Below the pieces are notes generated by a model. That model saw only the letters and a program-made list of their open reading frames with translations, ran no database searches and had not been told where the DNA came from. 64,000 nt of DNA from Scyliorhinus canicula (Eukaryota). Position 1 is the first letter of the stretch. Every line of letters begins with the position of its first letter. Positions 4,788 through 64,000 of the stretch are shown here, one piece after another. The translations under genes and the position numbers were made by a program. Where the stretch lies: contig NC_052171.1 of the NCBI RefSeq assembly GCF_902713615.1, positions 19,379,952 to 19,443,951 of the forward strand, given 5' to 3'.

Positions 4788-5420
4788 AGACACGGAACCA
4801 AATATTGTGTGTTCCAGCCGTGTCTCCCAAGTCTCTGCTCTTCCTGCTGAATGTGCCTCATCACCAAGATGCAAAGTGACTGGTTTTTTTTTATTGGTTC
4901 ACGGGATGTGGGTATCGCTGGCTGCGCCAGAATTTATTGCCCATCGGTGAGGGCATTTAATTGTCAACCACATTAGTCCATTCCTTTTCTAAAAAAATAT
5001 TTTTTTTTTTTATCAATTTAGACTAACCAATAATTTTTTCCAATTAAGGGGCAATTTAGCATGGCCAATTGCCTAACCTGCACTTCTTTGGGTTGTGGGG
5101 GCGAAACCCACGCAGACACGGGGAGAATGTGCAAACTCCACACGGACAGTGACCCAGAGCCGGGATTCGAACCCAGGTCCTCAACGCCATGAGGCAGCAG
5201 TGGTAACCACTGTGCCACCGTGCTGCCCTACGAATACAAATCTTAATGCAGCCCAATGATGCACCTTTGCTGACACGGAGAGAGTGATTTCTGTTCGGTT
5301 CTGTCGGGTGGTGTGGGTTTTTATACTTCACTTTGAAGGTTACAAAGTTTAAGTTGTCTTGGTCCGCAGTGATGTCCACGTCAGCACCAGCCATTGGCCG
5401 GTCATCAAGGTCACTGATCT
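4788..5420 (-). pseudogene. msmb: MSMB-like promoter/exon 1 remnant with start codon and donor deleted
   Basis: Paralogous to 29307-29760. TATAAAAA at 5318-5325 and the CCAAT box are retained; the ATG|GTATGT segment is missing; a SINE sits at 5030-5228. Confidence 0.8.
5030..5228 (-). mobile_element. tRNA-derived V-SINE, short subfamily
   Basis: Same family as 3823-4035. Confidence 0.8.
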
Positions 5421-5639
5421 GATATCTTCATGCTGATACTGAGGCCAATAACCTTGGGGAGGTCAGCCAATGAGTAAAGACCATAATGCAACAGGCACCT
5501 CCTCAACTCTTGGTGAAAATAGTGTCTTGGGATCTTTTACATAAACAAATGAATGTGGCCAGGACCTTTGCTCAACATGTGGTCTGACAGTGCCGCACTC
5601 CTCAGGATTGGCTGTCACACCCAGAGGAGGAACTTCCAA

Positions 5640-5920
5640 TCTGAGTTGAAAGGAAAATTGGTGGAATTACAACAGAAGGATTCAGAGATAAAGCGGCTGT
5701 GTCAGAAAGCATAAACAGAAGTAGAATCTGTACGTCAGAGTGTTATTAAATGAAAAATAACGTATTAATGAGGAAGTGGAGACCGTTACATATTCAGGCA
5801 GATGAGAAATGGGCAGACGTTCATCAAGTGGTATTACCGGTGAGTTATAGAAAGGAGGTTTTGTGGGGAGCACATGAAATTCCAGTCGGAGGTCATTTAG
5901 TCGTAAGGAAAACTCAAGCA
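5640..5920 (+). mobile_element. Gypsy (Gmr1-like) integrase zinc-finger relic
   Basis: QVVLPVSYRKEVLWGAHEIPVGGHLVVRKTQA; paralogous to 31600-31870, 52370-52550 and 53930-54210. Confidence 0.75.
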
Positions 5921-6289
5921 TATTGTTATGCTGAATCTATCTGCTTCTGGCAGCATCTTTTCATTCTAACATTGTTAACGTGTTACGAGATGCCAACCTC
6001 AATGATACCATGTTTTCGAGGCCTTTGCCTCTTCTCTCTAATTCTCCAGTTTATCTGTTGGTACATACAGAGGCACCAAGTTTAATGATCAAACTGCGTT
6101 GTTGCCCTTCTGTCTTTCTCTGTATTCATGCCTGCTGAGTCACGTGCTGCACTGTTCCAATCCTGAGGATCTGTTGCATTACTTGTAAAAATGGAAAAAC
6201 CCTGCTACAAATAGGCAGGAAAGGAACTTTCATTTTGTTGCAATGAATCCAAGACGGGTCATGTTTATTGTCAAGATTTACTTGTGGTC

Positions 6290-6690
6290 TCACGGAGATA
6301 TCTGGAGACGGGCAGGATTAAACGATAAAGCATTTATTGTTAATCCAGAACTATATACACATCCCAGGTACGGCCAGTAAGGGTGGTGGCTACGCTCAGT
6401 TTCCACGGTCTCTGCATCGTACCGTGGCTGGTACTGCTCACCAATCCCGCAGTAATCTTTTGCCAACAACCCCACATCCAATCTCCAAACCGCCCACTGA
6501 ACTGTGCCCATCTCAATGTCAGATCTACCAGATGCGGAGTGTGGCCTGACGATCGTGGAGTATTCTGGTGGCATATCAGTTGTTGGCAAACTCCTGGAAA
6601 TCACAGAAAGATAATGCATCAGAAATATGCCATCAGTGAGGGTTAACGTCCTACTGTACTGTTAACACTAGACAATTTCACTAACCGCTC
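6290..6690 (-). pseudogene. msmb: Orphan MSMB-like exon 4 start fused to an L1 relic
   Basis: Acceptor TTTCCAG| at 6594-6596, then SLPTTDMPP (gene A has SLAPTDVPAG). Intron side 6594-6690 matches 16683-16790. It then runs into the L1 fragment also seen at 43200-43350. Confidence 0.75.
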
Positions 6691-7323
6691 TGAGAAAGTG
6701 AGGAGTGTGGGGGGGGGGGGGGGGGGGGGGGCGGTGAGCTTAGGTAGGGTGCTCTTTTGGAGGGCCTGTGCAGACCCGATGGGCTGAATGTATCCTCTGC
6801 CCTGTAGGGATTCTGCACATTGTGCAGAACATGAACACAGTCACGGAGTGTTTGCAAAGAGTTAATGTTCCCTCGTAGTTAAGTTAAAATTGGGGTTTTA
6901 ATTGTTTAATGGGTTGCCCCAATATGAAGGATGACACAGATGTTTTGTGAATCAAGTGAATACTGAACACAATAAAGTTGAAGGCGTCCTTCCTTGTGCT
7001 TATTGTATAGTCACCACCGGAGCTTAATGCGGAGTCGAAGAGCTGAATGGTCTGTTTCTGTCCTGTATCATTATTCAGGCAATTACTTGGGACACTGATA
7101 CATGGGGATGGTTGGGGTACTGATCGGCCCGCAGTCTTGACTCGAAGTCAATACCCTCTCTGTGTGTCTCAGTTATAACTTCATCAGTCGCTGATACTGA
7201 TTGAATTAGATCTGCCTGTCTATTCACTGTTCCCATCACACACTGCTCCACAATTTATTGTACCATCAAGCGAAAGGTAATCAGCTCCCCACTGGTTGAT
7301 GGACCAGGACCATGGAGTGGAGT

Positions 7324-7655
7324 TAGAACATAGAACAGTACAGCACAGAACAGGCCCTTCGGCCCTCAATGTTGTGCCGAGCCATGATCACCCTACTCAA
7401 ACCCACGTATCCACCCTATACCCGTAACCCTTAACCGTACTTTTATTAGGACACTACGGGCAATTTAGCATGGCCAATCCACCTAACCCGCGCATCTTTG
7501 GACTGTGGGAGGAAACCGGAGCACCCGGAGGAAACCCACGCACACACGGGGAGGACGTGCAGCCTCCGCACAGACAGTGACCCAGCCGGGAATCGAACCT
7601 GGGACCCTGGAGCTGTGAAGCATTTATGCTAACCACCATGCTACCCTGCTGCCCC
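7324..7655 (-). mobile_element. HE1/V-SINE-type SINE
   Basis: Full head, V core and CR1 tail. Confidence 0.9.
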
Positions 7656-9800: not shown

Positions 9801-10108
9801 GGGCAGCACAGTGGTTAGCACTGTGGCTTCACAGTGCCAGGGTCCCAGGTTCGATTCCCCGCTGGGTCACTGTCTGTGCGCACGTTCTCCCAGTGTCTGT
9901 GTGGGTTTCCTCCGGGTGCTCCGGTTTCCTCCCACAGTGCAAAGACGTGCAGGTTAGGTGGATTGGCCACGATAAATTGCCCTTAGTGTCCAAAAAGGTT
10001 AGGAGGGATCATTGGGTTACGGGGATAGGGTGGAAGTGAGGGCTTAAGTGGGTCGGTGCGGACTCGATGGGCCGAATGGCCCCCTTCTGCACTGTATGTT
10101 CTATGTTC
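9801..10108 (+). mobile_element. HE1/V-SINE-type SINE
   Basis: Head, V core and GGGCCGAATGGCC...TGTTCTATGTTC tail. Confidence 0.85.
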
Positions 10109-10119
10109 TTTTGGTCTTT

Positions 10120-12129: not shown

Positions 12130-12477
12130 CATAGAACATAGAACAGTACAGCACAGAACAGGCCCTTCGGCCCTCAATGTTGTGCCGAGCCATGATCACC
12201 CTACTCAAACCCACGTATCCACCCTATACCTGTAACCCAACAACCCCCCCCCTTAACCTTACTTTTATTAGGACACTACGGGCAATTTAGCATGGCCAAT
12301 CCACCTAACCCGCACATCTTTGGACTGTGGGAGGAAACCGGAGCACCCGGAGGAAACCCACGCACACAGGGGGAGGACGTGCAGACTCCACACAGACAGT
12401 GACCCAGCCGGGAATCGAACCTGGGACCCTGGAGCTGTGAAGCATTTATGCTAACCACCATGCTACCCTGCTGCCCC
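12130..12477 (-). mobile_element. HE1/V-SINE-type SINE
   Basis: Full-length copy, near-identical to 19770-20121. Confidence 0.9.
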
Positions 12478-14339
12478 AATCTTACTGAATGGCACAGCAG
12501 GTTCGACTGCTGCCATGTTGACATAGGTTGAGTGGTACTACAGAAACACCCGTGAGAAGGGACCAAACGTTGTTAATTACCTGCCCTGACACTCTGCCCT
12601 GATTTTCACTCCTCTTCAAATACTTCCCTTTCAGCCACGAGACGGGAAGGTTGAGGAACAGCCGTCATTTTCAGCGGGCCGAAGGTGGAGTGGCCCCACA
12701 CTGCCGATGCTGTGAGAAAGAGCTTCTCTTTGTAACTAGGAGCCTGGAACTCGCTGCCGAGGAGGGTACAGGGAGCAGAGGTGGATCAATCGTCTGGAGA
12801 GGAAATTGGAAAAACAGGTGAAGGAAGAGTGCGATGGGGACAGAGCGAGGGAGTGGCACTGAGGGGGGAAATACGGGGGGGGGGGGGGTTCCAGCGGGTG
12901 AAGAGGCTTGTATCTGCCTGCCTTCCCAATCAGTCAAACTCGTGAGAAAGGTTGGTGGATGGCGCGCACAGTGCCGTGATTGCCTGCGACGTCTGGGCGA
13001 ACCGTCGGATCATCTACCCGAGGAATGATCAGACAGTGGAGACTTCAGGCTGAATCAAGTGGCAAGTATTTCACTTGCTGAAGGGTGCGTGCTAGCTGAG
13101 CGACGCATGCAGCCAGACTGTAGCTTCCTGCAAATGTGCCTGAGCTATGTGTCATGTCGGTGTTGCTGTTTTGTCCATCTTTGTGACTGGTTTATCAGTC
13201 AGAGCTGAATTTCTGTCCCTCGAATAAAAATGCCTTTTAAAAAAAAAAAAATGATGAGTTGGGGAAGAGGAGAAGGGAGAGGGCAGCCCTCGCACGAACT
13301 GTCAATCCCTTGTGCCGTATTTGGCCGCCATGTCAGTGCAGAGGCCCAGTGAGCAGAGCTGTGGAAAGAGTCAGGGAGGCGTTGGCACAGTGGGATTGTC
13401 ACGGGGTCGGCGTTCCATAGATCCGGGGTAACGTTCCAGGGAGCCGGTTTCAGATCCCTCCCCAGCAGAGGGTGAAATTTGAACTGAATAGAAATCAGGA
13501 ATGAAAGGGCGAGCGAGTATGTTATTGCCAGTGGTGCTCCCTTCATGTCCGACCTTCATGTGTGACTCCAGACCAATGTGGTTCTGTCCACGTGTCTTAC
13601 GGCTGACGAACTGTTTCTCCAACTTTTCTTTTCTCCCCAGGACCCACTGTGACCAACCGGCTGCCCTTAGCGCGCACCTTTTACTGTGAAAGGGGAGTCT
13701 CCTTGATCTTCACCATCTCGCTCCAATCAGGTCCACGGGAGGAGAGGGCAATGCGCATATCGGGTGCAGACCTCAACCACTTCCTTTATGCCATCTTCGC
13801 CTCTTGTGTGAATGGGAAATCCAACCTCGCGCGTAGAGGTCGTCGTGAAGGGCAACAAAATGCTTGTTTTACTCAGCACCGGATACTCCTGGGAGATGCT
13901 GCTCCAGAATTCTGACCGCCTTGTGGGCTTTTTGGCGAGTTTTTAATGTGCTGCCCCTGCTCCGGTATAGCAGCACAGTCTTCTCATTTGGAGTCAGTTG
14001 TAAGTTAATAACCAGACTCTGGGGCCTCAACCTCAAGAGGAATTTTTCACCCACCACTTCTTTTTCAATCTGAAACTTCTCTCAGATGTACGGGCCATAG
14101 AGTTTTACAGCACACAGGCCCTTCGGCCCATCATGTCTGTGCTGGCCATCAAGCACCTACCTATTCTAATCCCTAGCACTTGGCTTGTAGCCGTGTACGC
14201 TGTGACATTTGAACCGCTCCTCTAAATGCTTCTTAAATGTTGGGTTCCTGCCTCCCCACCCACCCCCTTTCAGGCAGTGAGTATGGGTGAAACAGGTTTT
14301 CCTCAAATTCCTTCTTAATCTCCCACACCCCGCTACCAG

Positions 14340-14686
14340 CGGGGAAACATTGAGATGGAGTGGACGTGGAGAAGATGCTTCCACTGGTGGGCGAGGTTAG
14401 AACCCAAGGGCCTCAGACTAAAGGGACGATCCGTTAAAACTGAGATGAGGAGGAATTTCTTCAGCCAGAGGGTGGGTGAATCTGTGGAACTCTTTGCCGC
14501 AGAAGGCTGAGGAGGCCAAATCACTGAGTGTCTTTGAGACAGAGACGGATAGGTACTTGATTAATAAGGGGATCAGGGGTTATGGGGAGAAGGCAGGAGA
14601 ATGGGAATTTGAAAAAGATCAGCCATGATTGAATGGCGGAGCGGACTCGATGGGCCGAATGGCCTAATTCTGCTCCTTATGGTCTT
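14340..14686 (+). mobile_element. CR1 LINE 3' end
   Basis: RRNFFSQRV-type ORF2 C-terminus and GGGCCGAATGGCCT 3' UTR hairpin. Confidence 0.8.
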
Positions 14687-16561: not shown

Positions 16562-16682
16562 TCATTTCCGAGCACTGGTACAGTCTTCTGCATGATTATC
16601 TGACTTGTAGACCTTGTAGCTACAAGTCGTCTTGTCTAGCAATGGGATACACCCTGCTGGAACATCAGTTGGAGCCAAACTC
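16562..16682 (-). CDS. msmb: MSMB-like gene A exon 4
   Basis: TTTCCAG| acceptor; SLAPTDVPAGCIPLLDKTTCSYKVYKSDNHAEDCTSARK*. Confidence 0.88.
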
Positions 16683-42676: not shown

Positions 42677-43007
42677 GGTAGCATGGTGGTTAGCATAAAT
42701 GCTTCACAGCTCCAGGGTCCCAGGTTCGGTTCCCGGCTGGGTCACTGTCTGTGCGGAGTCTGCACGTCCTCCCCGTGTGTGCGTGGGTTTCCTCCGGGTG
42801 CTCCGGTTTCCTCCCACAGTCCAAAGATGTGCGGGTTAGGTGGATTGGCCATGCTAAATTGCCCTTAGTGTCCTAAAAAGTAAGGTTAAGGGGGTTGTTG
42901 GGTTATGGGTATAGGGTGGATACGTGGGTTTGAGTAGGGTGATCATTGCTCGGCACAACATCGAGGGCCGAAGGGCCTGTTCTGTGCTGTACTGTTCTAT
43001 GTTCTAT
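42677..43007 (+). mobile_element. HE1/V-SINE-type SINE
   Basis: Head, V core and (TGTTCTA)n tail. Confidence 0.9.
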
Positions 43008-44016: not shown

Positions 44017-44022
44017 TTTACT
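44017..44022 (-). terminator. Variant polyadenylation signal AGTAAA of gene B (gene C: 59305-59310)
   Basis: Aligns with AATAAA of gene A in the conserved 3' UTR context. Confidence 0.5.
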
Positions 44023-44103
44023 GTGATATACATGTTTGATGGAGAAAGAGAGCTCCCCCATTCTCCCTTTGTACTTTGATCTGCCGTGATTATGATGCTT
44101 TTC

Positions 44104-44233
44104 TTATTTCCCAACACTGTGATGCACCCCACATTCGATGGAAGAATCATTCCTCAGATGGACTCTGTAGCGACAGCTCTGACGGTCAAAGAATGCGATA
44201 CAGTCATCTGAGTAACCAGATGGTATGCCGTAC
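44104..44233 (-). CDS. msmb: MSMB-like gene B exon 4
   Basis: GGCAG| acceptor; YGIPSGYSDDC...GK*. Confidence 0.93.
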
Positions 44234-51188: not shown

Positions 51189-51340
51189 ACTCAGCTCAAC
51201 GATACACCTTTGCTGTCGCCGAGAGAGCGATTTCTGTTCGGTTCTGTTGGGTGTTGTGGGTTTTTATACTTCACTTTAAAGGTTACAAAGGTCAAGTTGT
51301 CTTGGCCCGCAGTGATGTCCACGTCAGCACCAACCATTGG
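51186..51340 (-). promoter_or_regulatory. Gene B proximal promoter and exon 1a
   Basis: CCAAT 51336-51340, TGACGTGG 51319-51326, TATAAAAA 51261-51268, ATG|GTATGT 51186-51188. Confidence 0.85.
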
Positions 51341-51497
51341 CCGGTCGTCAAGTTCGCTGATCCGAGAGAATCTTAACGCTGGAGGAACTTCCAATCTGAG
51401 CTGAGTGTGAGCTGGGGTGAGGGTGGGGGGGAATGTCATTGACCATCACTGGTGTAGTGAGGTCAGAGGTCCAGCCACTGACTTCTGCTGACGTCAC

Positions 51498-51682
51498 TGG
51501 GGCTGGTTTAGCTCACAAGGCTAAACCGCTGGCTTTTAAAGCAGACCAAGCAGGCCAGCAGCACGGTTCGATTCCCGTACCAGCCTCCCCGGACAGGCGC
51601 CGGAATGTGGCGACTAGGGGCTTTTCACAGTAACTTCATTGAAGTGTATTCGTGACAAAAAGCGATTTTCATTTTTTCATTT
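51498..51682 (+). mobile_element. Short tRNA-derived SINE
   Basis: A box TAGCTCACAAGG, B box GGTTCGATTCCC; absent from the duplicate at ~53215. Confidence 0.8.
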
Positions 51683-52549
51683 GTTGACAATCACAGTTGA
51701 CAATTGCAGGCTGGTGCAGTGCTGTGTACCAGTGTGAGTGAGCCCGAGTCAGGAGAGCTGAAAATGGAGCACAACTCAGAAACAAGGGTCTTTCTCCTCA
51801 GTTCCCTGATTGCTCAAGGTGTGAGGACTGAGTAACTCTGAATTTCACTGGTAACAATGGCCGTCCATTATGTATTCCGTCTTCAGGTGGAATTTTCCAT
51901 TCTGAAAACCATGTGTGATGGCGGACAGGAAAAATGGAGTGAGTCCTGGGTGAGGAGGGTGTACCTGCCCCTGAACAGGAGACCCCTATCAGGCTGGGGG
52001 CACTCAATGCACCATGGTGAAGTCAGTGGTAATCTAATGTGTAAATTAAGCTGAGAGAGTGGTGATAAGTGACTTCGTGGTGGTCGGAGTAATAGAGACA
52101 TTTTTCAGGGGTACAATTTAATCTGGTAATTATGCAGCTGGCTCACAGGTGGGAGTGTTGTGGAGTGTAGTTGAAAAGCCTGTGGAGAGTCAGAGGTGTT
52201 GGAAGAAGCATATCCTGGGCTGTTTCCAGATTGTAACAAAATCACAAAGTCACAAATTGAGATCGGAGGAGGAGAAATTGACTAAAGACAAGAGGGCTGT
52301 GGTTCAGTTATCAGAAACCAGATGGTTGATGAAACAGAAGAGCAGCTGGAGGATCAAGCTGATATCTTTAGTTCAGGAAAATTGGCAGAATTACAACAGA
52401 AGGATTTGGAGATAAAGCGGTTTTGTCAGAAAGCATAAACAGAAGTAGAATCTGATATTACACCAGAGTATTATTACATTCGATATAATGTATCAATGAG
52501 AAGGAGAAACCGTTGCATATTCAGGCAGGTGACAAATGGACAGAAGTTG

Positions 52550-52800
52550 ATCCAGCAGGGGGCAGCAGAGCGGAGCTTCTGATTGGCTGTTCCGGGGAGA
52601 TTTGCATACGTGCAGTGCGGTCAGCGTAAGTTGAAGGTGCACCTGCATCAGTGACCCGAGGAGTTCGACGGAAGTCAAGCATCCAGCAGGGGGCAGCAGA
52701 GCAGAGCTTCTGATTGGCTGTTCCGGGGAGATTTGCATACGTGCAGTGCGGTCAGCGTAAGTTGAAGGTGGTTTGTGAAGGGGCTGTTCTCGAGTGACAG
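52550..52800. repeat. Two ~89-bp direct repeats carrying CTCF-like, CCAAT and octamer motifs
   Basis: 52550-52638 and 52681-52769, at the junction of the promoter duplication. Confidence 0.85.
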
Positions 52801-52801
52801 G

Positions 52802-52873
52802 TCTTAATGCAGGTCACCTCACCAAGAAAACGTTCCCAGATCAATAATCCCTCATCAGAATAATTTTACTCAG

Positions 52874-52905
<32 letters not shown>

Positions 52906-54101
52906 CATACTCAGCTCAACGATACACCTTTGCTGTCGCCGAGAGAGCGATTTCTGTTCGGTTCTGTTGGGTGTTGTGGGTTTTTATACTTCACTTTAAA
53001 GGTTACAAAGGTCAAGTTGTCTTGGTCCGCAGTGATGTCCACGTCAGCACCAACCATTGGCCGGTCGTCAAATTCGCTGATCCGAGAGAATCTTAACGCT
53101 GGAGGAACTTCCAATCTGAGCTGAATGTAAGCTGGGGTGAGGGTGGGGGGGAAAGTCATTGACCATCACTGGTGTAGTGAGGTCAGAGGTCCAGCCACTG
53201 ACTGCTGCTGACGTCAATGTCACTGGCTGTTAGTTCTATCCACTGACAAACATCACAGTTGACAATTGCAGTCTGGTGCAGTGCTGTGTACCAGTGTGAG
53301 TGAGCCCGAGTCAGGAGAGCTGAAAATGGAGCACAACTCAGAAACAAGGGTCTTTCTCCTCAGTTCCCTGATTGCTCAAGGTGTGAGGACTGAGTAACTC
53401 TGAACTTCACTGGTAACAATGGCCGTCCATTATGTATTCCGTCTTCAGGTGGAATTTTCCATTCTGGAGACCATGTGTGATGGCGGACAGGAAAAATGGA
53501 GTGATTCCTGGGTGAGGAGGGTGTATCTGCCCCTGAACAGGAGACCCCTATCAGGCTGGGGGCACTCAATGCACCATGGTGAAGTCAGTGGTAATCTAAT
53601 GTGTAAATTAAGGTGAGAGAGTGGTGATAAGTGGCTTCGTGGTGGTCGGAGTAATAGAGACATTTTTCAGGGGTACAATTTAATCTGGTAATTATGCTGC
53701 TGGCTCACAGGTGGGAGTGGTGTGGAGTGTAGTTGAAAAGCCTGTGGAGAGTCAGAGAACTGAGGTGTTGGAAGAAGCATATCCTGGGCTGTTTCCAGAT
53801 TGTAACAAAATCACAAAGTCACAGATTGAGATCGGAGGAGGAGAAATTGACTAAAGACAAGGGGGCTGTGGTTCAGTTATCAGAAACCAGATGGTTGATA
53901 AAACAGAAGAGCAGCTGGAGGATCAAGCTGATATCTTTAGTTCAGGAAAATTGGTAGAATTACAACAGAAGGATTTAGAGATAAAGCGGTTTTGTCAGAA
54001 AGCATAAACAGAAGCAGAATCTGATATTACATTCGATATAATGTATCAATGAGTAGGAGAGACCGTTGCATATTCAGGCAGGTGACAAACGGGCAGAAGT
54101 T
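52802..54101. repeat. Tandem duplicate of 51086-52548 (promoter, exon 1, Gypsy relic)
   Basis: Near-identical by direct comparison. Confidence 0.9.
52906..53060 (-). promoter_or_regulatory. Gene B distal duplicated promoter and exon 1b
   Basis: TATAAAAA 52981-52988, ATG|GTATGT 52906-52908; CCAAT and TGACGTGG intact. Confidence 0.8.
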
Positions 54102-54884
54102 CATCAAGTTGTATTCCCGGTGGGTTATAGGAAGGAGATTTTGCAGGTAGTGCATGAGGGTTCAGTACCGGGTCATTGAGCAGTAAGGAAAACTCGAGCC
54201 AAAATACAAAAACATTTTTATTGACTGTGGCTGCAAGAGGATGTCATGGACTTTGGCTGCACCTGTCACACATGCCAGATGGTAGGAAAATCTCAAACTG
54301 ATTGATTGCGTAGGACCCCTTCCTCCGCCAAAATGTGGGAATCAGTATTTGTTTTTTTGAGAAACATTTTGTTCTATTATCAAATATAAACAGTAATGTA
54401 CAGATAGTCAAAAATCTACACACAATTTAACTTCCATGAATAACTCAATATAAACCTGCCGCCCCTCTACATCATTTGGATATTGCGTCAGCAAAGGAGG
54501 CCCAATGTCCAGCAAGCTGAGGACAGGACCAAAATGCATGCGGGTGGTTTGCCGGTGTAAGTAAACAACGGTCACACTGGTCCTCCACGTCTTGAAATGA
54601 TCCACTCATGCTTTCCTTCTCCCAGTGCGTCCTGTGCGTCACACTTGGAACTGAACCAAACTCAGTCTGGCACAGGGGACTTCTCTCCAAGGGCTTCTCT
54701 CCAAGCCTCCGCGTGATGTTCTTGTCGGATGGCCTGATTTCTATTACAAGAACATTTGGAGCTAATGCTGTAAACGATTTACTGTGGATCAATATATCCA
54801 AAACAACAGATGGTTAACAGTATGAACAAGCACAATCAACCTCTCTCTCTCCAGCTCCCAAGCCAGTCTGAGGTCACCTGACTC

Positions 54885-55350
54885 GAGGATTTACAAGGAT
54901 GCTACCGGGACTTGATGGTCTGAGTTATAAGGAGAGGCTGAATAGACTGGGACTATTTTCCCTGGAGCGTCAGAGGCTGAGGGATGATCTTATAGAGGTC
55001 TATAAAATAATGAGGGGCATTGGTAAGGTAGATGGTCAACATCTTTTCCCAAACGTAGAGGAGCCAGGACTAGAGGGCATCGGTTTAAGGTGAGAGGGGA
55101 GATACAAAAGAGACCAGAGGGGAATTTCTTTCACACACAGGGTGGTGAGAATCTGGAATGAGCTGCCAGAGGCAGGGGTAGAGGTGGGTACAGTTTTTTC
55201 CTTTTAAAAAACATTTACAGTTACATGGGCAGGGTGGGTATAGAGGGATATGGGCCAAATGCGGGTAGGTGGGACTAGCTTAGTGATAGTAACTGGGCGG
55301 CATGGACCAGATGGGCCGAAGGGCCTGTTTTCCTGCTGTAAACATCTCTG
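54885..55350 (+). mobile_element. CR1 LINE 3' end
   Basis: LSYKERLNRLGLFSLERQRLRDDLIEVYKIM and 3' UTR hairpin. Confidence 0.85.
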
Positions 55351-56369
55351 ACTCTGACGGTGACTCTAACATTTACTTGTGAGCTAATGAGACTCCTAGT
55401 GGTCAGTTGGTGGATTACAACCCAACCATGTTGCACTCCTCTGTCACCACAGAATCCAGTTCCTCCACTCATTTCTCATATATGCTCGATTCAAAGGATT
55501 GCATTGGATTTTATTTATTGTCACGTGTACTGAGGTACAGTGAAATGTATTTTTCTGCAAGCAGCTCAACAGATTATTAAGTGCATGAAAAATAAAATAA
55601 ATACATAATATTTATATACCTAATAATAGGGCAACACAAGGTAATAATAATAATCTTTTATTGTCACAAGTATGAAGTTACTGTGAAAAGCCCCTAGTCG
55701 CCACATTCCGGTGCCTGTTCGGGAAAGCTGGTATGGGAATTGAACCCGTGCTGCTGGTCTTGTTCTGCATTGCCACTGAGCTAGGTACACAATGTAACTA
55801 CATCAACACTGGCATCGGATGAAGCATACAGGAGTGTAGTGTTAGTGAGGTCAGTCCATAAGAGGGTCATTTAGGAGCCTGGTAACAGCGGGGAAGAAGC
55901 TGTTTTTGAGTCTGTTTGTGCGTGTTCTCAGACTTCTATATCTCCTGCCCGATGGAAGAAGTTGGAAGAGTCAGTAAGCCGGGTGGGAGGGGTCTTTGAT
56001 TATGCTGCCCGCTTTCCCCAGGCAGCGGGAGGTGCAGATGGAGTCAATGGATGGGAGGCAGGTTTGTGTGATGGACTGGGCTGTGTTCACGACTCTCTGA
56101 AGTTCCTTGCGGTCTTGGGCCGAGCAGTTGCCATACCCAGGCTGTGATGCAGCCCGATAGGATGCTCTCTGTGGTGCATCTGTAAAAGTTGGTCAGGGTC
56201 AATGTGGATGAGATACTTTTCGGGAGTCAGGAAATGGGACCACCGTTAAACACGCAGCAAAGCTCCCACACCACATGACAAAATAATCTGATGAAAGGTT
56301 GATGAGCTAAAATGTTCCCTCTCTCTCTGTTTCTCTCTTTGCCTGTCTCTGGGGAGTCAAAGGAATGAT

Positions 56370-56695
56370 CCTTTCCCTCGACCGAAACTCAAACACGGTG
56401 TGGGCGGGGTCCAGCGAATCACGCACACATATTTTGGGGTTGTGAAAAATGGGAAGATTCTGGGTGGGAGTGTCCGCGGTCTTTGCCAGGATAGTGGAGG
56501 AGGGAGTGGACCCGGACCCTTTGGTGGCGATATTTGGGGTTTCAGAGAAGCCGGAGCCCATGGAGAGGAGGAAGGCCGATGTCTTGGCCGTCGCCTCTCT
56601 GATTGCACGGCGGCGAATCTTGCTGGAGTGGCGGTCGGCATCGCCACCGGGGGTAGCAGCATGGCTGGGTATCTGTACGACTTCCTGCGATTAAA
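56370..56695 (+). mobile_element. L1-clade ORF2 C-terminal relic
   Basis: ADVLAVASLIARRRILLEW, paralogous to 27650-27900. Confidence 0.75.
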
Positions 56696-56719
56696 CCTTG
56701 TGGGGATTGGGCCCTTTCC

Positions 56720-57660
56720 ATCCAACAGAGGATCATCGGTGTACAGGAACACCCTATGTTCCACTACCCTCCTCACTATCCCCCTCCACCTATCTGAGGC
56801 CCTCAAGATGATGACCAATAGCTCTGTCACCAACACAAAGAAGAGGGGGGGGGGAAATGGCTACCCCGCCTTGTCCCCCTGATTAATGGAAAATACCCCA
56901 AGCTCATGTCATTCGCACGGACGCTGACCTTCGGAGCTTTGTACAATAACCATGTCCAGGACACAAAGCTGGACGGCAGCGCATTGAACAACCGCCGCAC
57001 ATTAGACAACAGTTGCCAATCTTTGGCAAACTCCATCTGACCTTCCCCAGTAAGGTGAGGGAGACGTCCCTCCAGCCTCGGGGCCAAGCACCTTCGCCAG
57101 TATCTTGGCATCGACGTTCAACAACAAAATGGGCCGTGCGACCCCGCGTTCCACTGGGTCCTTATCCTCCTCGAACAGAAGTCAAAGGGGCGCCTGCATT
57201 AACGTCTCGCTTAAGGAACCCCTCGCTGCCAAATACTCAAACATTTCCACTGATAACGGCACCAACTGTTCTGCAAACGTGCGCCGGGAACCTAAGTCCA
57301 ACTGCTTGACCGCCCGCATTCGCCCGATCGCTGTTGTGACCTTCTCTGCACCCCTCGGCCCCTCTCATCTCTTCCAACTTGGGACAATCCAGGCCCTCCA
57401 AGAAGTCCTGCATACCTGACCCTAACGCAAACGGTTTGGACCTGCAAAGATTCTGATAGACCCATTTACCTGCTCTGGCACGGACTCGGGTTTTGAACAT
57501 GAATGATCTTTCGGGAGGCCGTTTGCTTCCTCACACGGCCAACCAAGAGAGGACTTGCCTTCTCCCCATCTTCGTACATGACCCCCTCGAGCATGGCAAC
57601 TGGCTTTCCCTGTGGATAATAAGTCCGACTGCTTTGACAAAGAATCTCCCAGGCTCCAAA
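56720..57660 (-). mobile_element. L1-clade RT relic
   Basis: LLYKAPKVSVRAN...RGTR and FLYTDD motifs, degenerate. Confidence 0.7.
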
Positions 57661-57934
57661 CGTCAGCTCCCCCTTCTCTCTCCACAGATGCTGTCAGACC
57701 AGCTGAGATTGTGCAGTATTCTCTGTTTTACCAGCTTCTTCCTGCGAGCTAGCTCTGGGGTTGGGTAATTCAAGTACCTAACATCCACCTACCAGCCTTT
57801 GATGTTCCTCCCCTGACTCCCGACCGAGATTTCTGCGAGATTATCTCCCCCCTCTCACCCCAATTTCAGGGCCTCCCACAAAACTGGAAGGCAAAACCGC
57901 CCCATTCTTGTTAAACCCCAGATACTCATCTTTC

Positions 57935-58495
57935 ACCCTGAGGCTGCATCAGGCTCTGGCCAGGCCCCATTTGGAGTATTGGGAGCAGTTTTGGGCCCCG
58001 TATCTAAGGAAGGATGTGCTGGCCTGGGAAAGGGTCCAGAGGAGTTTCACAAGAATCATCCCTGGAATGAAGAGCTTGTCGTATGAGGGACGGTTGATGA
58101 CTCTCATTGGGGTTTAGAAGGATGAGGGGGGATCTTATTGAAACTTACAGGATACTGCGAGGCCTGGATAGAGTGGACGTGGAGAGGATGTTTCCACTTG
58201 TAGGAAAGACTGGAAGCAGAGAATACAATCTCAGCCTTTAAAACAGAGATGAGGAGGAATTTCCTCAGCCAGAGGCTGGTGATTCTGTGGAACTCTTTGC
58301 CGCAGAAGGCTGTGGAGGTCAATTCACTGAGTGTCTTTGAGACAGAGATGGATAGGTTCTTGATTAATAAGGGGATCAGGGGTTATGGGGAAAGGCAGAA
58401 AAATGGGGATGAGAAAATGTCAGCCATGATTGAATGGCGGAACAGACTCGATGGGCTGAGTGGCCTAATTCTGCTGCTATATCTTATAGTCTGAT
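57935..58495 (+). mobile_element. CR1 LINE 3' end
   Basis: RPHLEY..QFWAP and RRNFLSQR motifs plus the 3' UTR. Confidence 0.85.
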
Positions 58496-59391
58496 GGCCC
58501 TTCAAATCCTTCTGCAAAATCCCAAGTCTGCCAACAACACTTCGTCCAATTACCACACCGCACACGAAACTGGGCCCACCTCAATGTCAGATCTACCAGA
58601 TGTGGAGCGGGGTCCAAGATAACGATCGTGGAGTATTCTGCTTTCCTCACCCCAGGCAGAAGAGATCTCCACGCCATGAAGAAGACGGTGAATGTTGGTT
58701 TTTAAAACTATTCTCTGTGTCATTAAGGGACAGCAGCATTGTTATTGGTGTTTAAGACAATCAGCAGAGCAAGGGTTGGTGATCCAAGGTATGACGTGGA
58801 GAGTTACATGGCAGCAGACTGTGGAGACAGCAACAGTACTGTCCGTACCTGGGATCTGTGTATGGTTCGGGATTAACTATAAATGGTTTATGTTTAAACC
58901 TTCACATCTCCAAAGGAAGGAACACATAGGGACAACATGTCCAGATACAGCGTGATTGCTTCCCATCAATTTCTCCTCCGGCCGACTTGGCTTCAATTCC
59001 TTTCCCTCTCTTTGTCCTCTCCGTGTGGTTCTGGATTCTGATCAGTGAATCATTCTTTATCCTTGAAGGCTTTCAGCACTCAACCTCCCAAAGACCAATG
59101 GGTCGCCTATCCACATGGACAAACTCAGACATTCTCACACCCACTCTCTCTGCAATGTGCCCTCACACACACACTCTCTCTCTCTCTCTGTCACACTCTT
59201 TTATATTCTCAATTCGACTCTCTTGTCTGCACACTGGCACACACACAAACATTTCTTGTTGAAATAATGGACGAGATTTGAGAATTGAACCACTGTGAGA
59301 TATCTTTACTGTGATATACATGTTTGATGGAGAAAGAGAGCTCCCCCATTCTCCCTTTGTACTTTGATCTGCCGTGATTATGATGCTTTTC

Positions 59392-59521
59392 TTATTTCCC
59401 AACACTGTGATGCACCCCACATTCGATGGAAGAATCATTCCTCAGATGGACTCTGTAGCGACAGCTCTGACGGTCAAAGAATGCGATACAGTCATCTGAG
59501 TAACCAGATGGTATGCCGTAC
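59392..59521 (-). CDS. msmb: MSMB-like gene C exon 4
   Basis: Same translation as gene B exon 4. Confidence 0.92.
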
Positions 59522-62500
59522 CTGCCGACACAGAGGAATAAGGCATCAGAAATACCCCGGAGGTAATGACCACAGTTCCCCTGTACAGTTTCACTGGACA
59601 ATTTCACCAGCGACTCCGATCAAGTGAACAACCAGAATTGAGAAAATTCCTTCTTTACCCACAATGCACCAGCTGCACCCTGAGAAGCCAATTACAGATG
59701 GGCAAAAGCAGAGAAGGGATTTATCATGGGGCACCTCCACCTTTACTCCATGTTCACTCTTTCTCCATCTCCACCCTCTCTCCATCTCCACCTTCTCTCC
59801 ATCTCCACCTTCTCTCCATCTCCACCATCTCTCCATCTCCACCCTCTCTCCATCTCCACCCTCCCTCCATCTCCACCCTCCCTCCCTCCATCGCCACCCT
59901 CCCTCCGTCTCCACCCCCCCTCCATCTCCACCCTCTCCACCCTCCCTCCATCTCCACCCTCCATCTCCACCCTCCCTCCATCTCCCTCCCTCTATCCCCA
60001 CCCTCTCTCCATCTCAACTGTCTCTCCATCTCCACCCTCCCTCCATCTCCACTCTCCCTCCATCTCCACCCTCCCTCCATCTCCACCCTCCCTCCATCTC
60101 CACCCTCCCTCCCTCCATCTCCACCCTCCCTCCATCTCCCTCCCTCCATCTCCCTCCCTCCATCCCCACCTTCTCTCCATCCCCACCTTCTCTCCATCCC
60201 CACCTTCTCTCCATCTCCACCCTCTCTCCATCTCCACCCTCCCTCCATCTCCACACTCCCTCCATCCCCACCCTCCCTCCACCTCCACCCTCCCCGTCTC
60301 CACCATCCATCTCCACCCTCCCTCCATCCCCACCCTCCCTCCATCCCCACCCTCCCTCCATCTCCACCCTCCCTCCATCTCCACCCTCCCTCCATCTCCA
60401 CTCCCTCCATCTCCCTCCCTCTATCCCCACCCTCTTTCCATCTCAACTCTCTCTCCATCTCCACCCTCCCTCCATCCCCACTATCCCTCCATCACCCTCT
60501 CTCCATCTCCACCTTCTCTCCATCTCCACCCTCCCTCTGTCTCCACCCTCTCTCCCTCCATCTCCACCCTCCCTCCATTTCCACCCTCCCTCCACCTCCC
60601 TCCCTCCATCCCCACCTTTTCTCCATCCCCACCTTCTCTCCATCCCCACCTTCTCTCCATCTCCACCCTCCCTCCATCTCCACCCTCCCTCCATCTCCAC
60701 CCTCTCTCCATCTCCACCTTCTCTCCATCTCCACCCACTCCCTCCGTCTCCACCCTCTTGCCACCCTCTCTCCCTCCATCTCCACCCTCCCACCCTCTCT
60801 TCATCCCTTCATCTGTTCATTCTCTACACTTTCTTCATCTATTCACTCTCATCATCTACCCTCCCTTTCCATCTACACTCCCTCTTCATCGGCACTCACT
60901 CTCGTGATCTCCACCATCTCTTCCTCCACATCCTCTGTAGTTCCACGCCCTCTTTTTTAAAATATAAATTTAGAGTACCCACTTAATTTTTTCCAATTAA
61001 GGGGCAATTTAGCGTGGCCAATCCACCTAGCCTGCACATCTTTTGGGTTGTGGGGGTGAAACCCACGCAAACACGGGGAGAATGTGTAAACTCCACACGG
61101 ACAGTGACCCAGAGCCAGGCTCGAACCCGGGTCCTCGGCGCAGTGAGGCTGCAGGGCTAACCCACTGAGCCACCGTGCTGCCCGACACTCTAAGATTCAT
61201 CAGTCCCAAACACGTATGTCATGGTAACTGACCATGGACATTTATTGGAAATCCTTCCAATTCTTTGGAAATGGGAATAAAGTGTTTTAATAAGAAAGGG
61301 GATGTAGTCTTCTGTCTTCGCGAGCTAACAGAATGACATCACCAGAGGGAGTGTGCCTAACGTGACCCAGTCTTGGTTTGCCTTTTGCCTGTGAGCAGAG
61401 CTCTGACCCCTTCATTCATAATAAATGCTCTCATGTTCCGGGTCTCGATGTGTGGACCCTCAACGTGGGAACGCAATCCCTTCTGTGGGATTTCTTTCTG
61501 CGATGAGATCAGCACGACAGGACTGACCTCCAGGTTTGGCTGTTATATCAAACCCACTTTGTGCTTTCATAAGAAGGATCAAGACAGGGTAGCATGGTGG
61601 TTAGCATAAATGCTTCACAGCTCCAGGGTCCCAGGTTCAGTTCCCGGCTGGGTCACTGTCTGTGCGGAGTCTGCACGTCCTCCCCGTGTGTGCGTGGGTT
61701 TCCTCCGGGTGCTCCGGTTTCCTCCCACAGTCCAAAGATGTGTGGGTTAGGTGGATTGGCCATGCTAAATTGCCCGTAGTGTCCTAAAAAGTAAGGTTAA
61801 GGGGGGGATTGTTGGGTTACGGGTATAGGGTGGATACGTGGGTTTGAGTAGGGTGATCATTGCTCGGCACAACATCGAGGGCCGAAGGGCCTGTTCTGTG
61901 CTGTACTGTTCTATTCTATTCTATCACACAACGGACTGACTCCAGGTGGAGTAGCAGAGAATCACTTACATTGTGCAGCATGACATTGATTCAGCGGAGC
62001 ACTCACACGTCATGCAGTCAGTGTTTCTCCAGGTTTCACCAAGCTCATGCCAGGTGCCATCAACGTCATCTTTACATTTTCTTGTTACTGGAGCGAGAGT
62101 GAGTGAGCGAGAGAGAAAGAGGGAGAGAGAGAGGTTAGTCTGTCACTGTCACATCAAAGTCTGAAGAAGTATAATGAGGTAACTTTAACCTTTGTGCTTT
62201 GGAAGGATTGCCTGGGCAACTGGCTCAGTTTAATGTCCATCACCGGTCTCTCTGGACCAGGGACGAGCCAGGTTCCTTTTCCAAGAGGATCTGTCCCTGA
62301 GAGTTTGACAGGGTGAATCTCGGAACGCTAAGGCTGCCAGGTCACTCATTCCTGGCTGGCCCTTCTTGGATGGGCGTGGGTTAAAGGTCAGGAGCCCAAT
62401 GTGCTGGAGGGGTGTTTCCGTGGTTACCACAATGAGCCCTCGGCCTGTCTGCAGGCCGCGCCCTCGCTTGTATTCGACAGCCAAGCTGAGGCGATGGAGC

Positions 62501-62782
62501 AGGAGCTCGCGAGTTGGGCAAGGCGGAATATTGGCCCACTCCTTCCTGAATCCTCGGGGAAGAGGAGAGCGTGAAAGTCAATCCCATGTGGCTTGAAGCA
62601 TTTATGTCGATGCTTACCTCGCAACCCCACACCCCCATCCCCACACCCCCATCCCAGATAGAGGTTGAGATTGGAAAGGTTCAATTCTTACTTTCATTTG
62701 GGACTTGCTGAGGAGAAACGTAGCAGGATGATTCTGCATCGTCTACAGCCAGGAGCAGGAGAGCAACGCACACCAAGGACTT
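59392..62782 (-). CDS. msmb: Beta-microseminoprotein-like gene C, partial, join(62692-62782,61970-62087,59392-59521); exon 1 expected beyond the window
   Basis: Protein identical to gene B except DCMRC->DCMTC; one synonymous change in exon 2; splice sites intact. Confidence 0.93.
59759..60808. repeat. 17-bp minisatellite in intron 3 of gene C
   Basis: Near-identical to 44471-45520. Confidence 0.95.
60953..61183 (-). mobile_element. tRNA-derived V-SINE, short subfamily
   Basis: Duplicate of 45665-45895. Confidence 0.8.
61585..61923 (+). mobile_element. HE1/V-SINE-type SINE
   Basis: Duplicate of 46297-46636. Confidence 0.9.
61970..62087 (-). CDS. msmb: MSMB-like gene C exon 3
   Basis: 118 nt with AG/GT boundaries. 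Confidence 0.94.
62692..62782 (-). CDS. msmb: MSMB-like gene C exon 2
   Basis: 91 nt with AG/GT boundaries. Confidence 0.92.
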
Positions 62783-62915
62783 CTGTCGAATTGGTGTCAG
62801 GTGGGAGGTGAGCGAATAAGTGTAGAACATGTTGAGGAATTCAGTCTGGTCAATCATGTCATGGTCAGATGTGAAAGATTAAAAAAAAATATATGTTAAT
62901 CAGCTGAACCACTCC

Positions 62916-64000
62916 TCAGAGTATCAATGCACTTACCCAGCAATAACCTGCTCACGGACACTCAGTTTGGGTTCCGTCAGGGTCACTCAGCTCCTGACCT
63001 CATTGCAGCCTTGGTTCAAACATGGACAAAAGAGCTGAATGCCAGGGGTGAGGTGAGTGACTGCCCTTTGACATCAAGGCAGCATTTGACCGAGTGTGGC
63101 ATCAAGGAGCCCGAGCTAAACTGGAGTCAATGGGAATCCGGGGGGAAAACTCTCCACTGGTTGGAGTCATTCCTGGCACAAGGGAAGATGGGTGTGGTGG
63201 ATGGAGGTCAATCATCTCAGCTCCAGGACATCACTGCAGGAGTTCCTCAGGGTCGTGTCTTCGGCCCAACCATCTTCAGCTGCTTCATCAATGACCTGCC
63301 TTCCATCATGAGGTCAGAAGTGGGGGTGTTTGCAGACAATAATGGAGCAGTCCATGTCCAAATGCAGCAAGACCTGGACAATATCCAGGCTTGGGTTGAC
63401 AAGTGGCAAGTTACATTCGCACCACACAAGTGCCAGGCGATGACCCCCCCCCCCCCCCCCCCCCTCCCCACCTCTCCAAAGCCTGCCCACCATCTACAAG
63501 GCACAAGTCAGGAGTGTGATGGAATACTCTCCACTTACCTGGATGAGCGCAGCTCCAACAACACTCAAGAAGCTCGACACCATCCAGGACAAAGCAGCCC
63601 CGCTTGATTGCTCCCCCTTCCACAAACATTCAAACCCTCCACCACCGACGCACAGTGGCAGCCGTGTGTACCATCTACAAGATGCACTGCAGCAACTCAC
63701 TGAGGTTCCTGAGGTAGCACCTTCCAAACCCACGGCCACTACCATCTAGAAGGACAAGAGCAGCAGATACCTGGGAACCCCACAACCTGGACGTTCCCCT
63801 CCAAGTCACTCACCATCCTGACTGGGAAATATATCGGCCGTTCCTTCACTGTCGCTGGGTCAACATCCTGGAACTCCCTCCCTAACAGCACAGTGGGTGT
63901 ACCTACACCACAAGGACTGCAGCGGTTTAAGAAGGCAGCTCACCACCACCTTCTGAAGGGCAACTAGGGATGGGCAATAAATGCCGACCCAGCCAGCGAC
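62916..64000 (+). mobile_element. CR1/L2-group LINE, duplicate of 47628-48925 with an extra internal deletion
   Basis: Same RT motifs and shared frameshifts. Confidence 0.85.

Follow-up and report, generated by a model that had tools for sequence, protein, structure and literature searches.

A tandem array of PSP94/beta-microseminoprotein-family genes in the catshark Scyliorhinus canicula

Does the minus strand of a 64,000-nucleotide stretch of Scyliorhinus canicula DNA (assembly GCA_902713615.2; the whole stretch is referred to here as the window) carry a tandem array of PSP94-like genes that gains and loses members, and how are these genes related to the known members of the family? A sequence-only reading had proposed three intact genes and two remnants in such an array. 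With high confidence, the minus strand can be said to carry three intact four-exon genes of the PSP94/beta-microseminoprotein family, arranged head-to-tail and designated A, B and C. Each splice junction checked in exons 2-4 of these genes is of the AG/GT type and each frame is open; together with the Pfam and PDB matches given below, this bears out both the three genes and their common strand. A search of all six-frame fragments of the window with the family HMM found nine coding exons, which are exons 2-4 of A, B and C, and none beyond them; tblastn with the three proteins likewise found no further coding exon in the window, and the remnants are detectable at the DNA level alone. Otherwise the window contains transposons. 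No syntenic marker gene lies within it, ten other long ORFs in it contain no Pfam domain and an Rfam search of it gave no match.

The features of gene A are the following.
29480-29800, minus strand: promoter and exon 1, with CCAAT at 29733-29725 and TATA at 29659-29652
21174-21264, 20507-20621 and 16562-16682 (including the stop codon), minus strand: exons 2-4, from junctions, Pfam and RefSeq
16842-19758, minus strand: intron-3 minisatellite, 17-nt unit, about 171 copies
16455, minus strand: polyadenylation-type motif AATAAA

Gene A corresponds to the RefSeq model XP_038641196.1, which is named beta-microseminoprotein-like; its product has 109 amino acids with 12 cysteines in the mature part. 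The start codon was placed at 29579 because the CDS of XP_038641196.1 spans 13018 bp. This ATG (29579-29577) forms the final three nucleotides of exon 1 and is followed by the donor GTATGT; exon 2 follows in phase 0, and the protein entry (P0026) consists of the initiator methionine plus exons 2-4. The span of the RefSeq model thus puts exon 1 8.3 kb upstream of exon 2; a search of the nearest 3 kb above exon 2 gave no conserved ATG|GT exon 1.

Genes B and C lie further along the same strand, within and beyond a duplicated segment.
47405-47495, 46683-46800 and 44104-44233, minus strand: exons 2-4 of gene B, from junctions, Pfam, PDB and RefSeq
44475-45511, minus strand: intron-3 minisatellite of B, 17-nt unit, about 61 copies
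62692-62782, 61970-62087 and 59392-59521, minus strand: exons 2-4 of gene C, from AG/GT junctions and an open frame
59763-60799, minus strand: intron-3 minisatellite of C, 17-nt unit, about 61 copies
43240-58528, no strand assigned: tandem duplication unit bearing B (15,289 bp); the copy bearing C starts at 58529 and runs off the window

Gene B is the RefSeq model XP_038641594.1, also named beta-microseminoprotein-like, so that the array is not hidden, as had been supposed, with respect to A and B. The RefSeq start of B is an in-frame ATG at 47543, within the inferred intron 1; the resulting N-terminal extension does not occur in the S. torazame orthologue, the orthologues begin with M-K, and this start is probably wrong. 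Gene C seems not to be annotated, and its product has no entry in the protein collection searched. The coding sequences of C and B differ at two of 336 nucleotides (one synonymous change in exon 2 and one Arg to Thr change in exon 3). Exon 1 of C should lie beyond the end of the window. Segments 43240-48157 and 58529-63445 are 98.6% identical and segments 48348-48891 and 63456-64000 are 95.6% identical; the divergence of the copies is 0.2-0.6% in the gene body and rises to 4-5% towards the ends, and C lacks 180 bp through a deletion. Judged by these alignments, B and C are the result of a recent 15.3-kb tandem duplication. The minisatellite that had been described in intron 3 is present in all three genes with the same 17-nt unit, and the array of A aligns with those of B and C.

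Membership of A, B and C in the PSP94/MSMB family is established by Pfam, by sequence matches in the PDB and by the fold of a model of A. Relatives were found by a full HMMER scan, word-based protein searches being nearly blind to this fast-evolving family. Both spliced proteins that were compared with Pfam PF05825 (gathering cut-off 22 bits) passed, B with 58.5 bits (E 1e-15) and A with 27.2 bits (E 6e-6), as had been anticipated from the sequence; exon 3 alone scored 26.1 bits for B and 24.6 bits for C. The PDB sequence matches of B were human MSMB (E 1e-14), chicken MSMB3, pig MSMB and habu SSP-2. In a residue-level alignment the ten cysteines of B all face cysteines in human PSP94, and its mature start aligns with residue 1 of the human protein. 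Mature B and mature C have exactly ten cysteines, and mature A has the same ten plus two; relative to B and C, A has an extra cysteine pair and no C-terminal VGK tail. An AlphaFold2 model of A with a pLDDT of 83.8 has a signal helix followed by all-beta structure, and its top Foldseek matches were 6rwc (first), 3ix0, 6imf_B and 2iz3, each with a probability of 1.00; the modelled A thus would have the two-domain all-beta PSP94 fold. By eye, the N-termini contain L-V-C-V-x-L-L-L-L-A-V as a hydrophobic core, with small residues ahead of S-C-Y or A-C-Q, and from the family the products of A, B and C would be expected to be secreted. MSMB and USM genes have four exons, with the ATG as the final three nucleotides of exon 1 (PMC3268785); gene A fits this structure, and B does so by inference. 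MSMP proper has three coding exons, a start codon in the homologue of exon 2 and a slowly evolving sequence (PMC3268785). An identity with MSMP does not agree with A, whose ATG lies in a separate exon 1, or with the rapid change of the sequences. The RefSeq model of B does begin within the exon-2 block, with the extension that the S. torazame orthologue lacks.

A conserved promoter with CCAAT and TATA, followed by an exon 1 that ends in ATG|GT, lies beside a Gypsy integrase relic in the units of the array. This module occurs four times in the window, always in one orientation and always just downstream of a relic homologous to 31269-31962. Besides that of gene A and a dead copy (see below), the modules are the following.
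51100-51400, minus strand: module nearest B, with CCAAT, TGACGTGG and TATA intact and ATG|GTATG at 51188-51186
52820-53120, minus strand: spare promoter/exon-1 module, ATG at 52908-52906, 99% identical to the 51.2-kb module

The module of A is 89-90% identical to the B-type copies, and segment 50582-51381 is homologous (85%) to 28898-29772, which comprises the promoter and the start of intron 1 of A. The spare module arose when a 1.7-kb segment was duplicated locally in tandem (51086-52555 versus 52802-54108). From the two intact modules upstream of B, and from orthologues that start with M-K, we infer that the 51.2-kb module is the true exon 1 of B. A gene model of the basking shark contains the same promoter module, read as part of its N-terminus.

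Remnants of genes and transposable elements were located as follows.
6303-6702, minus strand: remnant 1, in which 6560-6702 comprises the tail of intron 3, its acceptor AG and the opening ~35 nt of exon 4
5150-5920, minus strand: remnant 2, comprising a dead promoter/exon-1 module (5150-5460) and a Gypsy relic (5651-5920)
49722-49795, minus strand: homologue of 21326-21391, a relic of an A-type intron 1 (3' end)
31269-31962, plus strand: Gypsy integrase relic upstream of the promoter of A, with Integrase_H2C2 (E 3.2e-12) at 31756-31950
43067-43352, minus strand: unclassified relic 3' of exon 4 of B, with a second copy at 6303-6567
32633-42444, minus strand: young full-length Ty3/Gypsy-type LTR retrotransposon between B and A, with gag and pol domains

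The remnants reported earlier are real. The exon-4 stump at ~6.6 kb is 92% identical to A over 6560-6702 and continues straight into the 3' relic 6303-6567, which is 82.6% identical to 43067-43352. The dead promoter at ~5.3 kb has kept its CCAAT and TATA, has lost the ATG and the donor and has received a SINE insertion. Two further relics were found upstream of B, the spare promoter and the intron-1 relic, the latter lying inside the inferred intron 1 of B with no exon 2 after it. Gene birth (the 15.3-kb and 1.7-kb duplications) and gene death (the exon-4 stump, the dead promoter and the intron-1 relic) have thus both left traces in the window.

The integrase match (E 3e-12) justifies the label 'Gypsy' given earlier to the relic beside the promoter, and DNA homologues of this relic lie at 52062-52555, 53624-54296 and 5651-5920. 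For the relic 3' of exon 4, its presence stands for B and for the 6.5-kb remnant and partly for C, which keeps solely the part above the duplication breakpoint; its assignment to L1 found no support, no Pfam, RT or endonuclease domain having been detected in 43067-43352. Near exon 2 of B and C lies an RT relic whose motifs, as known from the literature, resemble those of a CR1/L2-type LINE and not those of Gypsy. The Gypsy pol in the window does not match the RT relics. PDB searches with the RT relics and the 3' relic gave nothing useful. As side observations, the LTR retrotransposon at 32633-42444 (949-bp LTRs with one difference, TG..CA ends and a GTAT target-site duplication) stands outside the gene family and widens the spacer between B and A, and ARAGORN gave a single tRNA-like match in the window (51500-51589), which is probably repeat-derived.

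The divergence of the genes was assessed on one deep pair, A versus B, with a protein identity of 33-39%. In the mature codons 42.6% of sites differ (44/34/37 over the three codon positions), with no third-position bias. In intron 2 plus the 3' UTR 28.8% of sites differ (Fisher p 3e-5 versus the mature codons), the gapped alignments used possibly understating the intron divergence; the signal peptide differs at 18.5% and the promoter at 10%. The corresponding estimates are dN 0.60, dS 0.76 and omega 0.79, with an intron K of 0.36. An omega of ~0.8 is below 1 and, taken alone, fits relaxed constraint as well as positive selection. On these site counts, the A-B divergence follows the pattern typical of MSMB and SSP genes. 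All the marks of a birth-and-death array are found here: copies in tandem on one strand, some of them dead, exons that exceed introns in divergence and the lack of a third-position bias.

On a single chromosome, S. torazame carries an A-type gene and two genes of the B type, with B upstream of A at a distance of 4.6 kb, which equals the catshark spacer minus the LTR element. In the tree, B and C are sisters (support 100/98), as are the A types of the two species (100/100); the A type sits on a very long branch, is retained in both Scyliorhinus species and shares its extra cysteine pair with the S. torazame orthologue. Orthologues in the two congeneric species are 67-76% identical, and the S. 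torazame A-type model has an odd C-terminus without two of the cysteines. Going by the tree and the shared order, A and B/C are old, strongly diverged paralogues, with orthologues of A and B in S. torazame. The expansion had been called active: the B/C duplication agrees with this, but the A/B split is old and is shared with S. torazame in like order and spacing, so the word applies to the B/C duplication alone. The named members of the clade that contains A and B are all chondrichthyan apart from one long-branch lamprey sequence, and teleost and turtle sequences fall outside; this placement fits the proposed expansion separate from those of birds and vipers.

Could B and C be a single locus that was assembled twice, as a retained haplotype or a false tandem duplication, leaving two live genes? 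The near identity of the gene bodies (0.2-0.6%), minisatellites of equal length and the absence of the C product from the protein collection would agree with this. The window, however, contains no N run or gap, the junction 58528/58529 is clean and lies within a unique relic, and S. torazame independently has two B-type genes. Both repeat ends diverge by 4-5% and C carries its own deletion; such end divergence exceeds allelic difference and fits paralogues with gene conversion in the middle. A double assembly is therefore considered very unlikely. Decay under relaxed constraint in redundant copies, with some of the apparently intact genes turning into pseudogenes, would account for the omega below 1, the dead copies beside live genes and the two C-terminal cysteines missing from the S. 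torazame A-type model. It would not be expected to leave the ten family cysteines, the splice sites and the frames intact in A, B and C, an extra cysteine pair common to two species, or a promoter and signal peptide far better preserved than the introns, and plain decay does not predict a dN of 0.60 above an intron divergence of 0.36; this explanation, too, is improbable.

Weightier, although still on the doubtful side, is the possibility that the genes represent a sister lineage (USM-like or 'msmp'-named) instead of orthologues of tetrapod MSMB, with MSMB serving merely as a family name. In NCBI, the A-type gene of S. torazame bears the name 'msmp2' and the relatives from skates are called 'prostate-associated microseminoprotein-like', and the split between MSMB and USM has been reported to be older than teleosts (PMC3268785). 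Neighbours on the ARID5B side mark MSMB and those on the ARID5A side mark USM-like genes (PMC3268785), and the window has no such marker. Against this stand the structure of gene A, with an ATG that ends exon 1 as in MSMB/USM and unlike MSMP proper (PMC3268785), and the best PDB matches, which are MSMB, MSMB3 and SSP-2.

Under the preferred reading of a tandem PSP94/MSMB-family array, each gene would work as follows. A compact CCAAT/TATA promoter would drive a short exon 1 that ends with the start codon; exon 2 supplies the signal peptide (M-K-x-L-V-C-V-x-L-L-L-L-A-V) and the first cysteine, and exons 3 and 4 encode two beta-sheet domains joined by the ten cysteines of the family, so that the products would be small secreted disulfide-rich proteins of ~90 residues. 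The array would grow by unequal crossing-over (the B/C and promoter duplications) and shrink by deletion and transposon insertion, of which the stump, the intron-1 relic and the dead promoter are the traces. Conservation is seen in the promoter, the 5' UTR and the signal peptide, while the mature peptide outpaces the introns; turnover may be driven by selection for new binding specificities, as suggested by the family. A wider reading is rather unlikely: that the A type is a new functional subclass of the PSP94 fold, that diversifying selection continues to act on the whole array in response to a partner that itself changes (such as the surface of a pathogen, or a reproductive or egg-case protein of CRISP type) and that an ancient promoter module, conserved across shark orders, keeps the copies in one expression programme.

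A close parallel is the habu SSP array. There, too, a few tens of kilobases hold a tandem set of genes of the PSP94 family; each unit has four exons, introns 2 and 3 contain LINEs and repeats, live genes flank a destroyed copy and the mature-coding exons outpace the introns. Of the sequence and fold matches of the catshark proteins, SSP-2 (6imf_B) is one of the best. In the habu, five live genes occupy 30.5 kb, whereas the catshark window has three in ~47 kb, and the two expansions are apparently separate. Habu SSPs are serum proteins that have been shown to bind the snake's own venom components. Marmoset MSMB1-4 (PMC2746217) resemble A versus B in being tandem copies with conserved flanks and rapid change skewed to one domain, and the multiple MSMB genes of New World monkeys, as cited in PMC3268785, carry the same signature of rapid evolution. 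The primate units are larger (32-35 kb, versus ~15 kb in the shark) and prostate-expressed, and the shark A/B split is much deeper than that between primate copies. Avian MSMB1-3 (PMC8167871, PMC3268785) and marsupial MSMB/USM (PMC3268785) are lineage-specific duplications of the same family. Human MSMB/PSP94 (3ix0, 2iz3) shares with B the ten aligned cysteines, the mature N-terminus S-C-Y and two domains, and its gene has four exons with the ATG ending exon 1 (PMC3268785), as in the catshark; it differs in being single-copy, its identity to B is about a third and the shark A type has 12 cysteines.

What the catshark proteins do can be approached through these relatives. Binding of PSP94 to CRISP2/3 and of SSP-2 to triflin is established (PMC8857485, PMC7150969; 6imf), and by analogy the catshark proteins may bind CAP/CRISP-like partners or act against microbes as chicken MSMB3 does. 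Among the fold matches of A, chicken MSMB3 (6rwc) ranks first, and it also matches B strongly in sequence, the C-terminal V-G tail included; for this egg-white protein, antibacterial activity and expression in the oviduct have been shown. Since the catshark, like the chicken, lays eggs, a role in egg defence is conceivable, and the role in defence or reproduction suggested earlier for the array is a conjecture of this kind.

Fast-evolving PSP94/MSMB clusters have been described before from monkeys, marsupials, birds and vipers, and that of the catshark is already annotated in part; in the literature searched, no chondrichthyan analysis of the family was found. For the catshark annotation the results mean that a gene (C) seems to be missing and that one model (B) probably has a wrong start, and that spurious N-termini in the gene models of other sharks are translated promoter DNA. 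The junctions and copies defined here can now be sought in catshark RNA-seq. Tandem duplication, loss and an unusually rapid change of the mature peptide, with promoter and signal peptide conserved, form a pattern that is extended to cartilaginous fish, and it would therefore be a property of the MSMB/PSP94 family across jawed vertebrates and not a quirk of primates, birds or vipers.

Exon 3 of each gene was recognized from cysteine-rich open stretches of the minus strand, and exons 2–4 were placed by reading the DNA of the window, which contains no runs of N.

Gene A, minus strand: exon 2, 21174-21264; exon 3, 20507-20621; exon 4, 16562-16682
Gene B, minus strand: exon 2, 47405-47495; exon 3, 46683-46800; exon 4, 44104-44233
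Gene C, minus strand: exon 2, 62692-62782; exon 3, 61970-62087; exon 4, 59392-59521

AG acceptors are present at all nine coding exons, a GT donor follows each exon 2 and each exon 3, and all three frames are open from signal peptide to stop, which bears out the three intact genes proposed by the sequence-only reading. The array is not hidden, as that reading had it, since two of its three genes (A and B) already carry names from automated annotation. A protein spliced from the window was 100% identical to S. canicula XP_038641594.1 (assembly GCA_902713615.2), the RefSeq model of B. A family HMM, built from 130 fetched database relatives of 85–135 residues, matched the nine known exons among 2717 six-frame fragments of the window; no further coding exons were found in this search.

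The proposed family membership was upheld by the Pfam PSP94 model (PF05825, cut-off 22 bits), which matched B at 58.5 bits and A at 27.2 bits; exon 3 of B exceeded the cut-off on its own. PDB sequence matches of B were human MSMB (E 1e-14), chicken MSMB3, pig MSMB and habu SSP-2, and A matched the same set of structures. In a residue-level alignment all ten cysteines of B lie opposite cysteines of human PSP94, and the mature start S-C-Y agrees between the two. An AlphaFold2 model of A (34-sequence alignment as input; mean pLDDT 83.8) had five MSMB/SSP structures as its top five fold matches (6rwc, 3ix0, 6imf_B, 2iz3 and 1xhh). The first domain of mature A carries two extra cysteines, common to its S. 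torazame orthologue, from which we infer an extra disulfide.

A HMMER scan of 1.8 billion representatives returned the RefSeq protein of A (P0026; XP_038641196.1, which like the model of B is named beta-microseminoprotein-like), which consists of Met plus exons 2–4. Its CDS span of 13,018 bp places the ATG at 29579-29577, where the DNA reads ATG/GTATGT, with the donor directly after the start codon. This exon 1 fits the family rule reported for MSMB and USM, in which exon 1 has the start codon as its last three nucleotides (PMC3268785). The promoter/exon-1 module (~300 bp) occurs in four copies in one orientation.

29659-29652, minus strand: TATA box of A, upstream of the ATG
29733-29725, minus strand: CCAAT box of A, upstream of the ATG
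29.6 kb: module serving A
51.2 kb and 52.9 kb: modules upstream of B, ATG/GT intact in both, 99% mutual identity
5.3 kb: module with boxes retained, ATG and donor gone and a SINE inserted

Between the A module and the B-type modules identity is 89–90%. In a basking-shark (Cetorhinus) model, XP_078421558.1, the first 49 residues map to all four modules (E ~5e-8); part of this protein model is therefore promoter DNA read as coding sequence, and conservation of the module extends across shark orders. A local tandem duplication of 1.7 kb was also observed (51086-52555 versus 52802-54108, 95–96% identity); as it gives B a second module, complete with Gypsy relic, two alternative first exons may be available to B.

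In RefSeq, B is modelled as a protein of 128 amino acids that starts instead at 47543, from an in-frame ATG a short way upstream of the exon-2 acceptor. This start is probably an artefact, because its N-terminal extension is not common to the S. torazame orthologue P0002 (whose own extension differs), because the relatives P0162, P0163, P0005 and P0026 all begin M-K, and because intact exon-1 modules lie upstream of B. Both B (47496-47543) and A (21265-21309) have an in-frame ATG without an intervening stop upstream of this acceptor; the positions are non-homologous, and RefSeq uses B's and not A's. Family models in several sharks look faulty at their ends: P0003 (Cetorhinus) carries an N-terminal extension made of translated promoter DNA; in P0004 (Heptranchias) a promoter-derived N-terminus was recognized by eye only, tblastn giving no significant match; and the S. 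torazame 'msmp2' model (P0161) covers a gene range of 111 kb, and its C-terminus looks foreign and lacks two family cysteines.

Every module sits just 3' of a relic homologous to 31269-31962, of which the segment 31756-31950 (plus strand) matches an integrase zinc-binding domain (E 3e-12); the 'Gypsy relic' landmark was therefore correctly recognized. The 'L1' label given to the relic 3' of B exon 4 (43067-43352) could not be confirmed. The claimed remnants were found at the DNA level, together with a further trace.

6560-6702: remnant made up of the last ~110 nt of intron 3, the acceptor and the first ~35 nt of exon 4; 92% identity to A
6303-6567: copy of the relic 43067-43352, directly abutting this remnant
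5.15-5.92 kb: dead promoter and its Gypsy relic
49722-49795: third trace, the 3'-terminal part of intron 1 of the A type, without exon 2 after it

As this relic lies 0.75 kb 3' of the stop in B, ~0.9 kb has been deleted at the remnant; remnant, relic and dead promoter form the junction of two dead units. The shared intron-3 minisatellite is likewise present in A, B and C: Tandem Repeats Finder gave the same 17-nt unit at 16842-19758 (~171 copies, A), 44475-45511 and 59763-60799 (~61 copies each, B and C). The consensus of A differs from that of B/C by one C/T difference, and, with its unit common to both, the minisatellite predates the A/B split. Its sense strand is strongly G-rich (plus-strand GC skew ~−0.7).

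A ~330-bp SINE recurs throughout the self-comparison, at 414-718, 2693-3050, 7324-7655, 9801-10109, 12130-12479, 19770-20125, 23228-23558, 30442-30790, 42677-43007, 46297-46637 and 61585-61924; the family is young (copies mostly 91–98% identical), and in intron 3 it has inserted separately in A and in B/C, in opposite orientations. Fragments that look by sequence motifs like CR1/L2-type LINEs lie 3' of A and C (14354-14677, 58167-58478) and within the first introns of all three genes (22774-23295, 47900-48496, 62927-63604); they comprise reverse-transcriptase pieces with RVT_1 matches (including 47900-48496 and 62927-63604) and conserved 3' tails that share 84% identity. A perfect 7-nt microsatellite, (AACCTAG) x 20.6, occupies 2573-2716.

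B and C lie in a large direct repeat (43240-48157 versus 58529-63445, 98.6%) that continues at 48348-48891 versus 63456-64000 (95.6%), and their coding sequences differ at two sites, of which one is synonymous and the other changes Arg to Thr. Such a repeat could be a duplicated haplotype, but divergence of 4–5% at both ends against 0.2–0.6% in the gene body, and a 180-bp deletion in C relative to B, fit this less well than they fit genuine paralogues whose central part underwent gene conversion, as B and C would then be.

A and B are 33–39% identical in protein, varying with the aligned stretch. In their mature-peptide codons 42.6% of sites differ (44, 34 and 37 changes at positions 1, 2 and 3), compared with 28.8% in the aligned intron 2 and 3' UTR (Fisher p 3e-5) and 18.5% in the signal peptide; dN was 0.60, dS 0.76 and intron K 0.36, all from one gene pair with short sequences and gapped intron alignments. 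The pattern matches that described for MSMB of New World monkeys (PMC3268785) and for the SSPs of the habu (PMC6609765).

In S. torazame three genes share one chromosome: P0161 is of the A type (76% identity to A), P0002 and P0162 are of the B type (72% and 67% identity to B), and P0002 lies 4.64 kb upstream of P0161 on the same strand. The catshark B–A spacer of 14.5 kb includes a 9.8 kb LTR element, without which it agrees with the S. torazame distance. This element (32633-42444) is a full-length Ty3/Gypsy-type retrotransposon, seen in the self-comparison as 949-bp direct repeats at 32633 and 41496 (99.9% identical). Its LTRs differ by one base and have TG..CA ends and a 4-bp GTAT target duplication, and its frames are open (gag, 582 aa with a zinc knuckle; pol, 1299 aa with RT, RNase H and integrase). 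It looks like a very recent insertion and, judging by spacing, is missing from the equivalent S. torazame spacer. Orthologues of both types with matching spacing imply that the A/B pair predates both species, and from these comparisons the split is judged to be old. B and C were sisters in the tree (100/98), as were the A types, on a very long branch. A wider tree, poorly resolved within the clade, united A and B (support 0.96), the named members being chondrichthyan except for one lamprey sequence and the teleost and turtle sequences falling outside.

Tandem, fast-evolving MSMB-family arrays are documented in marmoset (PMC2746217), in birds and marsupials (PMC3268785, PMC8167871) and in the habu viper (PMC6609765), where 30.5 kb hold five SSP genes and a destroyed copy. 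The catshark array resembles these in its tandem order, fast evolution, dead copies and transposon-laden introns, and is one more array of this documented type; no published account of such arrays in the chondrichthyan lineage was found in the literature searched. The earlier interpretation was thus largely right, and overstated in calling the array hidden and in view of the age of the main A/B split. In Callorhinchus milii the cluster of P0012 holds eight distinct sequences with >90% mutual identity (seven named elephant-shark cDNAs or models, called 'small serum protein 2' or 'beta-microseminoprotein', and one unnamed MetaClust entry), and there are at least two other paralogues (P0022 and P0164); in chimaeras, too, the family seems to be multi-copy. 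By analogy with their relatives, the catshark proteins would bind CAP/CRISP partners (PMC8857485, PMC7150969) or act in egg defence, like chicken MSMB3 (PMC8167871).
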